In this document: piece by piece, positions 6,809 to 9,608 of the stretch
Numbering within the stretch: the stretch's first letter is position 1
How the letters are laid out: every line of letters starts with the position of its first letter
Virus record (IMG/VR): IMGVR_UViG_3300028840_008185
Coordinates: 1-64,000 of that record
Reading direction: 5' to 3' (one strand)
DNA: 64,000 bases
Notes under the pieces: generated by a model
Told to the model about the DNA's origin: nothing
The model's database searches: none
The model's input: only the letters and a program-made list of their open reading frames with translations
Made by a program: the position numbers and the translations under genes

Positions 6809-7391
6809 CTTCCTTCTCCTTTTCTAAATAAACTCGCAGGCTCTAAGTATTATGATTCCAAACATTCCAACAAGAACTAGCATCCAAATTGCAACAAAGG
6901 TCCAACCAATTGCCCTTGAAAAACGCGGAAACTTTTCATAGATGTGCTGGCAGCCGCGAATAATGCCAAACACAACAAGAGCGAGAGCTATTATAAAGCC
7001 CATCATCATTAGGAACTCTCTGGATTCTTCCGGACTAATCATTCTTCAGCCTTTCTAATACTCTATCAATGACCTTCTGTGCTCTTTTACTTGGCCTCTT
7101 TGTCAAGAAACCTCTTCTCCTGCCCTTGTCGTAAGGAACCGGAGTGGAAAACTGCACTGCGGTTAAGTCCACAACCTTGCCGTTATCTTCTATCCACCAG
7201 TGAGAAGCGCCCTCGTGCTTTAAATTGACCGCATATAATCCGGCGGCTTTGCCGCCTTTCAGGTGATAGTAAGCCTCGCTGGCCACATAACAATGACCTG
7301 CGAGAGGATGAGTTCCACGGAACTGCGGCTTCAGCAGATCTGGCGTTAGAGACTTTACGATAAGCTTCTTGATGTTCATATTTTCCTTTCG

Positions 7392-7471
7392 AGCCGGGTG
7401 GAGGAATCGAACCCCTTGCCTTTCGGCGGCGCCTTACAAGGGCGCTGTCAGCCCAGCCGACATCACCCGGC
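7392..7471 (-). tRNA. tRNA-Thr (TGT), atypical: 8/4 fold with variable-arm hairpin
   Basis: GCCGGGTG/CACCCGGC, GCGCC-CTTGTAA-GGCGC, V arm GCC-GAAA-GGC. Confidence 0.8.
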
Positions 7472-7478
7472 GGTGTTA

Positions 7479-7947
7479 TTGAGAAGATCGATAGGCGGGA
7501 TTCTGTCTAGGGCCATCATTCATCTAGGCCAGCCATTACTGACTAGCTCAAGCCCCCTACCCAATCCTTAATCTGCGAGCAACAGACGGATCTGTTTGGA
7601 GTTGCACCACCTAGAGATTGGCCGTTTCAACCAGACTTAACTGGCTCGTCTCTGTTCCTCTAATCCGGCCCTCACGGGCGATGGGCGTTGCCCACTAAGC
7701 TGCTCTGTGGTGTCCCGACCTTCCTCGTCAAGATTGCTCGTCTCCATAAATTAGTTTGCGTAGAATCTCATATGCCACCTTAGCACACTTTTCTTGGTAA
7801 AGTTCTTTTGCTTTGCAATAAACCTTACCCTCATTTTCAAAGGTTCCCAGAAGCCTATGAAGTTCAACATACGCCCTAATAAGCTCATCCTTCTCTTCGT
7901 AAGTCATGGAGACTCGCTTTCTTGCCGCGATGGCCTAATCTTCTCAA
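7479..7947 (-). ncRNA. rnpB: RNase P RNA, minimal bacterial type, with an ORF-containing P3 insertion
   Basis: CR-I GAGGAAGGTCGGGAC, CR-II ACAGAGA, CR-III TGAAAC, CR-IV AGATGAAT, CR-V ACAGAATCCCGCCTA; P1 TTGAGAAGAT/ATCTTCTCAA; P2 GGCCATC/GATGGCC. Confidence 0.93.
7728..7907 (-). CDS. 59-aa ORF nested in RNase P RNA helix P3 (MTYEEKDELIRAYVELHRLLGTFENEGKVYCKAKELYQEKCAKVAYEILRKLIYGDEQS)
   Basis: uninterrupted ATG..TGA frame filling the P3 insertion; composition like neighbouring phage ORFs; just under the ORF-track cutoff. Confidence 0.7.
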   Translation of the reverse strand: MTYEEKDELIRAYVELHRLLGTFENEGKVYCKAKELYQEKCAKVAYEILRKLIYGDEQS

Positions 7948-8279
7948 CTCTTATAAACTGCAATAATCAAGATTTTACCCCTGATGTGCTTATTGAACTC
8001 TTCCAATTCTTCCGCCGGAATCCAATATTCTTCATGTATGGAACTCCCAACAATATGAGTTTCATATTTGCTTATGAAGTCATCGTCAATCTCAAACTTG
8101 CATACATAACCTACGGCTCCACCCGCAGTGTTCCAATCCCTGGCGATCTGTTCAGCATACTCAAAGTTAGATACAGGATAGAAAAGGGGCTGCCCAGGCA
8201 GCCTGGGCGGGAAAGACCTAAACCTGGATTGAGCGATTTTATTACATTCACTCTCACCAAGCGAGCGATACAAAATCAT
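7944..8279 (-). CDS. conserved small protein of the family often labelled ADP-ribosylation/crystallin J1
   Basis: LYR...FPPRLP.QP.FYPV.N..YA.QIARDWN...HEEYWIPAEELEEFN. Confidence 0.65.
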   Translation of the reverse strand: MILYRSLGESECNKIAQSRFRSFPPRLPGQPLFYPVSNFEYAEQIARDWNTAGGAVGYVCKFEIDDDFISKYETHIVGSSIHEEYWIPAEELEEFNKHIRGKILIIAVYKS

Positions 8280-8969: not shown

Positions 8970-9608
8970 CTAAATATCTATTACCGTTACTTCTCTATTC
9001 ACCGGCTTGCAGTAAGCAACGTTCGCAAATATACAACCATCTTTCTCTTTCCTAAAGCCGCCACCAGAATGGACATGGCCATACACATGAACCTTGGGCG
9101 AAAGATCTTCAAGCCTGTCTAGGAGCGCCTCGCTTCCCACATGCTCCGTTCTCTGGTAAGGCACGTCGCCAAACCCGTGAGGAGCGCCATGGGTGATTAG
9201 TATGTCCACATCATCGGGGATGAGGCTATACTTCTCAACCAAGTCTTCCCCATGCCTGGGGAGATCGAATACTCCCATGCCTATAAGACGAGGAACCCAC
9301 GGGGTTCCATAAACCTTAAAGCCTTCTATCTCTATTGAGGCATCCTGCAAATAGGTGCAGGGGAGTTCGCTTATTCTCTTTGGCTCCCTGGCTAAGAAGT
9401 GGTCATGATTCCCACCAACCAAAAGCTTATGCTTGTGAGGCAGGTGTTCTATCCACTTGTAGAAATCCCCAAGAATATCACCGAAAGCCGCCATCTTTTC
9501 CTGGCCAAAATTCAGGAAGTCTCCAGCATGGATAAATATATCGCCGTCAGGAATGTAGGGAATATCCCTATGATCTCCATGCGTGTCGGCTATTGCTACA
9601 ATTCTCAT
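8970..9608 (-). CDS. calcineurin-like metallophosphoesterase
   Basis: DTH, HAGD, GNHD, THG and GHVH motifs. Confidence 0.92.
   Translation of the reverse strand: MRIVAIADTHGDHRDIPYIPDGDIFIHAGDFLNFGQEKMAAFGDILGDFYKWIEHLPHKHKLLVGGNHDHFLAREPKRISELPCTYLQDASIEIEGFKVYGTPWVPRLIGMGVFDLPRHGEDLVEKYSLIPDDVDILITHGAPHGFGDVPYQRTEHVGSEALLDRLEDLSPKVHVYGHVHSGGGFRKEKDGCIFANVAYCKPVNREVTVIDI

Follow-up and report, generated by a model that had tools for sequence, protein, structure and literature searches.

A selected protein gene nested in helix P3 of a reduced RNase P RNA

Helix P3 of a reduced bacterial type-A RNase P RNA (Rfam RF00010; 7948–7478, minus strand) encloses a protein gene of 59 codons in the window, by which we mean the whole 64,000-nt stretch of DNA analysed here (positions 1–64,000 of virus record IMGVR_UViG_3300028840_008185). 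The ribozyme architecture is complete, comprising P1–P5, P7–P12, P15–P18, CR-I to CR-V and the bulged U of P4, with catalysis inferred from it; the ORF is a genuine gene whose protein is under purifying selection, with translation again inferred. Diverged phages have inherited the same nested layout. On balance we favour, as the best explanation, a selected gene nested in P3 of an RNA that would serve alternately as message or ribozyme, a reading whose catalytic and translational halves both remain inferences.

The source contig is 318 kb long, and an identical stretch lies on ~452 kb contigs of other assemblies. Rfam and ARAGORN identify 35 tRNA genes in the window, all on the minus strand and interspersed with small ORFs, a layout from which the window is likely to be part of a huge phage; neighbouring genes match phage families GP88 and PHROG 12251. 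Upstream of the ribozyme is a gene for a 111-residue protein (7944–8279, minus strand; 90% amino-acid identity to its copy in a diverged phage, L183), whose UGA stop (7946–7944) falls inside P1. Downstream, an 81-nt tRNA-Thr(UGU) (7391–7471, minus strand; ARAGORN) begins 6 nt past P1, and homologues of this tRNA come after the module in the related loci L183, L184 and L188. A promoter/terminator scan found no promoter- or terminator-like site between the 111-residue gene and the ribozyme. Because no promoter-like site lies upstream and the 111-residue gene stops inside P1, the module is probably polycistronic.

The ribozyme core and its closing helices

The RNaseP_bact_a covariance model matches 7476–7745 (minus strand) with 145.8 bits (E 7e-45; the RF00010 gathering score is 100 bits) over model positions 1–367, and aligns CR-I to CR-V. 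CR-I and the 5′ strand of P4 (GAGGAAGGUCGGGAC) occupy 7712–7726 (minus strand) in the cmscan alignment, with a bulged U at 7718; here AGG[U]CGGGA (7721–7713) pairs with UCCCGCCU at 7500–7493, keeping the conserved bulge, and, set against the Rfam consensus, three of the P4 pairs show compensatory changes of both bases. The same alignment assigns P5, P7–P12 and CR-II/CR-III to 7590–7711 (minus strand), with the CR-II/III motif pair at 7658–7616 and a short P12. The remainder (7478–7589, minus strand; cmscan, complementarity and MFE) holds reduced P15–P17, P18 with a GUAA loop (7547–7528), J18/2, the P2 3′ strand, CR-V and the P4 3′ strand (7506–7491) and the P1 3′ strand. Across the whole window at gathering thresholds, Rfam reports only RNase P and tRNAs and no intron family, and INPHARED contains nothing resembling this RNase P RNA.

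The core is minimal, as the preliminary description had held on finding P13/P14 and P19 not evident: in the cmscan alignment the 44 model positions of P13/P14 have shrunk to 1 nt and the P19 insert is absent. P13/P14 are usual in type A, and reduced natural type-A RNase P RNAs exist. L15 is without its usual GG(U) motif, the 5′ side of the P15/P16 loop reading AAACAG with a single G (cmscan alignment); the L15 GGU motif pairs with the tRNA 3′-CCA. With both the L15 GG and P13/P14 missing, it is possible that activity is weak or dependent on protein.

The strands that close the RNA lie far from this core, with P1, P2 and the 5′ side of P3 ~200 nt upstream of CR-I. cmscan puts model positions 1–43 (P1–P3) on the final ORF codons and flags many non-standard pairs there; we located P1 and P2 by maximal-helix scoring, an earlier 6-mer heuristic having been too noisy. 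The P1 5′ strand GUUGAGAAGAUU (7937–7948, minus strand) forms 12 bp, 2 of them G-U, with 7489–7478, and the P2 5′ strand GGCCAUCG (7928–7935, minus strand) forms 8 bp with 7518–7511. When the 800 nt upstream were shuffled, the combined P1 and P2 match of 20 bp was reached in 3 of 1000 shuffles. An unconstrained MFE fold of 7476–7950 recovers P1, P2 and both stems of P3. Among phage RNase P clades (the window, L009, L027, L050, L077, L071 and L068) the P1/P2 sequences vary, and complementarity to the respective 3′ strands is kept in each.

P3 is an irregular helix of ~24 bp that encloses the ORF (7907–7728). Its 5′ half (7904–7927, minus strand; pair table and MFE) runs from an outer segment (7927–7920) through a loop (7919–7914) to an inner segment (7913–7904), and includes a weak SD-like AAGAAAG and the AUG. 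The 3′ half (7726–7749, minus strand; pair table), with inner (7749–7740), loop (7739–7734) and outer (7733–7726) segments, doubles as codons 53–59 and the UGA stop (7730–7728). Seven of the eight positions in the outer stem (7927–7920/7733–7726) are paired, with a conserved G·A mismatch; the internal loop is 6 × 6 with two G-C pairs in its centre; and the 10-bp inner stem (7913–7904/7749–7740) holds the AUG (7907–7905). The 3′ strand of the outer stem contains the UGA, one base short of GAGGAAGGUC. All sequence statements of the preliminary description, namely five conserved regions, distant P1/P2, the P3 stems, a 59-codon ORF and the placement of its AUG and UGA, therefore held. The RNaseP_bact_a alignment placed the core, and the position given for the insert, between P2 and CR-I, is upheld by complementarity and folding. 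The central reading, an RNase P RNA with a coding ORF nested in P3, is supported, and the presence of both activities on one RNA is inferred.

A conserved gene and an inherited nested layout

The gene (7728–7907, minus strand) is identified by its codon usage, homologues and dN/dS, and encodes an acidic, putative two-helix hairpin of no known family. A codon log-odds model trained on the window's 52 long genes gives it 0.453 bits per codon in frame, compared with −0.15 and −1.27 in the shifted frames; the in-frame value exceeds those of 93% of true gene windows read in frame, of all spurious small ORFs (104/104) and of every off-frame window. An exhaustive HMMER search identified a homologue of 59 residues (P0002, 59% identity), and a profile search a further four (P0004–P0007). 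The third HMMER match, P0003, is a 1307-residue repeat protein and was judged spurious. The homologues measure 55–59 residues, apart from one truncated copy of 46, and are distributed over five other phage lineages; their contigs come from other samples and represent different phages, with flanking genes changed at 50–62% of synonymous sites relative to the window. A word-based protein search with the ORF alone returned only the ORF itself, and an IMG/VR related-locus search using the ORF, its 111-residue neighbour and a two-sequence profile returned only the source contig.

Comparison with the L183 copy reveals 61 nucleotide differences over 177 sites without an indel, retaining 35 of 59 amino acids (pS 0.69, pN 0.26, dN/dS 0.17); interior codons 4–51 give similar values (pS 0.68, pN 0.30). 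When 61 substitutions are placed at random the frame stays open in 5.6% of trials, and the observed amino-acid identity was reached in none of 20000 neutral simulations. Across five full-length copies pN is well below pS in all ten pairs, and dN/dS is 0.05–0.21 where dS can be estimated. No copy among the five carries an indel. Close strains (L084–L086, L040 and L064), which have an identical ORF and an unchanged module at ≥99.9% identity, were rejected as uninformative for selection tests.

AlphaFold (AF2, five-sequence alignment) predicts a hairpin of two helices, H3–23 and H32–54, with a pLDDT of 80. Searches of Pfam, PHROGs, PDB sequences and Foldseek (PDB, BFVD) gave no significant match for the protein, and at E ≤ 1 there was no match to Ribonuclease_P or any other Pfam family. 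The protein and all its homologues are acidic (pI 4.5–5.4). Folding energy of the ORF interior is unremarkable (z = −1.4).

At least two further diverged phages, L183 and L189, have the order P1-P2-P3[ORF]-CR-I. L183 is syntenic (DUF2188, the 111-residue gene, ORF, core, tRNA, YunG and GP88), and its P1–P3 5′ strand, the 42 nt that begin with P1 and end immediately ahead of the AUG, matches the window at 41 positions; the L183 P3 5′ half has one wobble-compatible change, and beyond it come the ORF, its register unchanged, and the core. In L189, whose contig stops beyond CR-I, an identical 5′ strand precedes an ORF of 56% identity and a CR-I that is intact; the upstream gene differs (a 61-residue membrane protein), yet it too stops at a UGA inside P1. 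The ribozyme core is identical between the window and L183 in 213 of 252 alignment columns (~88% without gap columns), whereas synonymous sites of neighbouring genes are 50–69% changed over the same distance. Core and 5′ strand are thus far more conserved than neutral sites, which argues that selection has acted on the ribozyme with the ORF in place. In P12, CCAG/CUGG of the window corresponds to CUUG/CAAG in L183, a double compensatory change. The P3 pairs are kept in all three nested lineages, with paired positions varying only in wobble-compatible ways and loop positions freely; this pattern may reflect structure, but the changes are one-sided wobbles without a double compensatory pair and do not amount to proof by covariation.

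Within the family the window protein is the outlier, identical to the others at 30–32 of 55 positions, while those share 42–49 of 55 with one another. Since nesting occurs on both sides of this split, it is most simply ancestral to the family as sampled; we infer that this is likely the case and that L184, L188 and L190 represent later losses.

The relatives form a graded series. The L183 core scores only 90.2 bits: in CR-I, UC is replaced by A, eliminating the P4 bulged U, and there are 4-nt deletions in both P18 and J18/2, although this locus is a single Logan contig and sequence error is possible. L184–L187 keep the 5′ strands and the ORF (L184 still has the P3 inner stem), and the core sequence immediately beyond GAGGAA, as far as the P15 region, has given way to a 95-residue ORF, with the CR-I remnant placed as its SD; the 3′ third persists (P17 loop, P18, J18/2, P2′, P4′ and P1′; Rfam, 43.7 bits). 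L190 has mutated 5′ strands and a truncated ORF. In L188 there is no RNase P RNA and the gene is free-standing (55 residues, ending ...LLYG), its ATG occupying the position of the ATG of the 111-residue gene at the DUF2188 stop. The more distant L191 and L192, whose 111-residue gene is 77% identical, have ~60 nt and then tRNA-Thr, with neither ribozyme nor ORF. The ORF persists wherever the module exists. Damage to the ribozyme, or its absence, in relatives shows that this phage group can dispense with it, and it could conceivably already be inactive in the window. As relatives keep the gene after loss of the RNase P RNA, we infer that the protein probably functions independently of the ribozyme. 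The suggestion made from the sequence alone that the peptide is an RnpA-like cofactor is consequently unsupported: the protein is acidic, where RnpA is strongly basic and bears an RNR motif, has no Ribonuclease_P match and is kept where the RNase P RNA is disrupted or deleted.

Insertions into P3 are not confined to this family. A metagenome scan with CR-II/CR-III motifs gave 51 loci. Most of these are of two kinds: GC-rich RNase P RNAs, where P3 spans 23–28 nt, and reduced, phage-like RNAs located in tRNA arrays, where it spans 15–41 nt. A sister clade (L068, L052 and L051; L070 and L078 are truncated) has a P3 span of 146 nt that is structured and non-coding: indels shift the frame, no frame is free of stops, and a helix shows compensatory change, GUUAAC/GUUAAC becoming GUCAAC/GUUGAC. 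Its cores score 139–148 bits to RF00010; a promoter-like TTGACT/TAAAAT lies just upstream, and there is no flanking tRNA. This non-coding expansion indicates that P3 tolerates inserts. Among these reduced RNase P RNAs, large P3 inserts thus arose at least twice, one of them being non-coding and another coding. The alternative raised in the preliminary description, that an ORF cassette invaded a tolerant loop, also fits, given the free-standing L188 homologue and the sister-clade expansion. Of 99 loci from a viral scan with a J18/2–CR-V pattern, none had a CR-I motif upstream besides the already-known L014 and L019; a 17-mer CR-II scan gave five chance matches, one new true RNase P RNA and two already known.

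Message or ribozyme: a proposed mechanism and its rivals

The start site is weak and is predicted to be buried in the finished RNA. SD pairing is −4.4 kcal/mol, within the weakest quarter of the phage's genes, whose median is −6.65, and the stop of the upstream gene precedes the AUG by 37 nt. In partition-function folding the AUG is unpaired with a probability no higher than 0.005 in the full RNA; in nascent RNAs this probability is mostly 0.5–0.99. The AUG and SD-like element are predicted to be >99% paired in the complete RNA and largely open until the P3 3′ strand appears ~170 nt later. The proposal that folding hides the start codon is supported to this extent, by thermodynamic prediction only.

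In the mechanism we propose, the module would be transcribed inside a long tRNA/mRNA polycistron, and the AUG of the nascent RNA would stay open for ~170 nt of transcription. Ribosomes would load through the weak SD, perhaps re-initiating after termination 37 nt upstream. Once the P3 3′ strand had been made and the RNA was free of ribosomes, the ~24-bp P3 would shut, burying the SD-like element and the AUG; P1, P2 and P4 would then form, and the molecule would work as RNase P RNA, presumably with host RnpA. Translation would keep P1 and P3 open, and folding would close the start site. RNase P cleavage at the 5′ end of tRNA-Thr would trim and define the 3′ side of the ribozyme transcript. Each molecule would be either message or ribozyme at any moment, perhaps message first and ribozyme afterwards, or only one of the two. 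A bolder reading, that ribosome traffic on the nested and upstream genes decides which transcripts become active RNase P, we regard as unlikely; were it true, the phage would couple the maturation of 35 tRNAs to the translational status of its infected host cell, and no trans-acting ribozyme would have been known before whose assembly is controlled by translating a gene within its own helix.

The most serious rival is a relic ribozyme, which remains possible. Here the RNA would no longer be catalytic, the small gene and the tRNA would be the functional parts, and the P1/P2/P3 pairing would serve as a clamp that stabilises the message or controls its translation. Relatives with a lesioned (L183), half-replaced (L184) or missing core (L188 and L191) favour this view, as do the persistence of the ORF wherever the module exists and the missing L15 GG. 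Against it, the catalytic-core features of the window are all intact, with compensatory P4 pairs and a score well over the gathering threshold; the core is still ~88% identical to that of L183 despite 50–69% synonymous change, and P12 co-varies. Such constraint would not be expected of a clamp that requires only end pairings. An intervening-sequence model, in which the P3 stem is an RNase III-type site, the ORF is excised as a separate mRNA in the manner of 23S rRNA intervening sequences and a two-piece ribozyme remains, appears unlikely. In its favour, the P3 stem borders the ORF exactly and resembles known RNase III substrates in length and internal-loop pattern; RNase P RNA pieced together from fragments is also active in vitro, and here P1, P2 and the basal part of P3 would keep the two pieces joined. 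However, the AUG and stop lie within the stems, so that a cut there would harm the message, and the window has no Rfam intron family at gathering thresholds.

Two further objections are all but excluded. A non-coding structural expansion of P3 with a fortuitous frame could draw on the 146-nt expansion of the sister clade, the weak SD and the 5.6% of simulations that keep the frame open. This is effectively refuted by dN/dS values of 0.05–0.21 without an indel, the 0/20000 simulations, frame-specific codon usage, the free-standing L188 gene with its own start context and the ordinary folding of the interior (z = −1.4). An assembly chimera joining the ORF into the ribozyme must be considered, metagenomic contigs being the sole source of sequence, but the same junctions are seen at ≥99.9% identity in independent JGI, ENA and Logan assemblies and are repeated in diverged relatives from other samples. 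We therefore retain, as the best of these readings, a selected gene in P3 of an RNA that may be message or ribozyme by turns.

Significance and comparison with known systems

RNase P RNA is one of two universal ribozymes, with an architecture catalogued over forty years, and to our knowledge no conserved, selected protein gene has been described inside one of its helices. The literature searched held no report of a phage-encoded RNase P RNA or of a coding insert in RNase P RNA, and a survey of huge phages (PMC7162821) mentions tmRNA but not RNase P. The present locus adds RNase P RNA to the translation-related genes of huge phages, beside tRNAs and tmRNA, and demonstrates that the core can remain under selection while P3 holds an insert of at least 180 nt. 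It may also be a naturally occurring case of competition between translation and ribozyme folding on a single RNA, as inferred here, while the series of relatives with intact, lesioned, half-replaced and deleted cores constitutes an evolutionary experiment on the dispensability of phage-borne RNase P.

With bacterial type-A RNase P RNA the window RNA shares CR-I to CR-V, the P4 bulged U, closure by P1/P2, P8/P9, P10–P12, P15–P18 and a GNRA L18. It differs in being phage-encoded within a tRNA/ORF polycistron, in lacking P13/P14 and the L15 GG, and in its ~24-bp P3 with a 180-nt protein gene at the tip. The sister clade L068/L052/L051 has its insert at the same position, between P2 and CR-I, in a similarly reduced core, but that insert is non-coding.

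The concept itself has analogues in intron-ribozyme ORFs, rRNA intervening sequences with ORFs and dual-function RNAs. Group I and II intron ribozymes loop out ORFs, for example the homing-endonuclease genes in phage T4 introns, and resemble our system in having a gene in a peripheral ribozyme helix, a start region in a hairpin and competition between folding and translation, the last only proposed here. Unlike them, the window RNA has no splice-site context and no Rfam intron match, RNase P acts in trans on tRNAs, and the acidic 59-residue hairpin belongs to no nuclease or maturase family. Insertions with ORFs are also found in rRNA genes, as in CPR rRNA (PMC11270868); like the intervening sequences of 23S rRNA, ours is a coding insert at the helix tip of an essential structured RNA with a long flanking stem, but the host is RNase P RNA and the protein has no Pfam similarity to the IVS protein family. 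Dual-function RNAs include tmRNA and small RNAs of the SgrS/SgrT and RNAIII/hld type, and the window RNA similarly combines a structured-RNA activity, here putative, with a short ORF on one transcript. It is set apart from these by a catalytic core, its catalysis being inferred, and by an ORF that is enclosed by the ribozyme's own closing helices.

Damaged and replaced ribozymes in the relatives

The RNase P core of L183, a contig from a diverged relative, spans 1537–1778 and has a P4 helix without the universally conserved bulged U (UC to A), together with 4-nt deletions in both P18 and the J18/2 junction; the compensatory P12 is nonetheless kept. These lesions point either to an inactivation that happened very recently or to an error in the contig. 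The relative L184 (1224–1511; likewise L185–L187) carries a 95-aa ORF, unmatched in Pfam, in place of the RNase P RNA from CR-I through P15. A CR-I remnant, GAGGAA, is positioned where the Shine–Dalgarno sequence of this ORF would be, and the ribozyme's 3′ third retains about 90% similarity to its counterpart in the window. Downstream of the truncated homologue of the P3-nested ORF in L190, the sequence (300–452) reads like a gene for an NlpC/P60-type cell-wall hydrolase; this passage is either a recombination junction or the product of a chimeric contig. The sister clade with the non-coding P3 expansion shows a further variation: at the P19 position, between the 3′ strands of P2 and P4, L052 (about 1860–1910) and L051 (about 470–525, oriented) have an additional hairpin, roughly 45 nt long, that is absent from L068.

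Elements and genes beside the module

The adjacent tRNA-Thr(UGU) (window 7391–7471, minus strand, 81 nt) has an apparent long variable arm, unusual for Thr; it is called by ARAGORN but is not among the tRNAs that Rfam reports at the gathering threshold. Counterparts at the same place in relatives measure 71–92 nt (L183, 1780–1850; L184, 1614–1705). In the relative L188, the expected ribozyme site (1676–1765) is occupied by a tRNA-like element, roughly 90 nt long, whose ends are complementary and which scores only weakly against the Rfam tRNA-Sec model (30.6 bits, below threshold).

On the other flank, a 111-aa gene (window 7944–8279, minus strand) ends inside P1. It has neither a Pfam nor a PHROG match and belongs to a large unnamed family (2237 hits, mostly bacterial, from cyanobacteria and Acidobacteriota), within which one UniRef name reads 'ADP-ribosylation/crystallin J1'. 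In one close strain (L085/L040), a 2-nt deletion at window 9209–9210 splits a 212-aa metallophosphatase gene into ORFs of 165 aa and 56 aa.

RNase P RNA genes in other viruses

Dense tRNA arrays on other viral contigs (IMG/VR, up to 279 kb) also enclose RNase P RNA genes, scoring 136–295 bits to RF00010 (L004, L009, L011 (=L006), L014 (=L025), L015, L026 and L027), with a tmRNA nearby in L015 and L026. We found no paper on phage-borne RNase P RNA in the literature searched; its carriage appears to be widespread among tRNA-rich large phages. The deposited jumbo-phage genome of Microcystis phage MaAM05 (MW495066.1, 274 kb), with no feature annotated in the region concerned, holds a full-length RNase P RNA (L199 1465–1864, equivalent to about 115284–115683 of MW495066.1; 251.8 bits).
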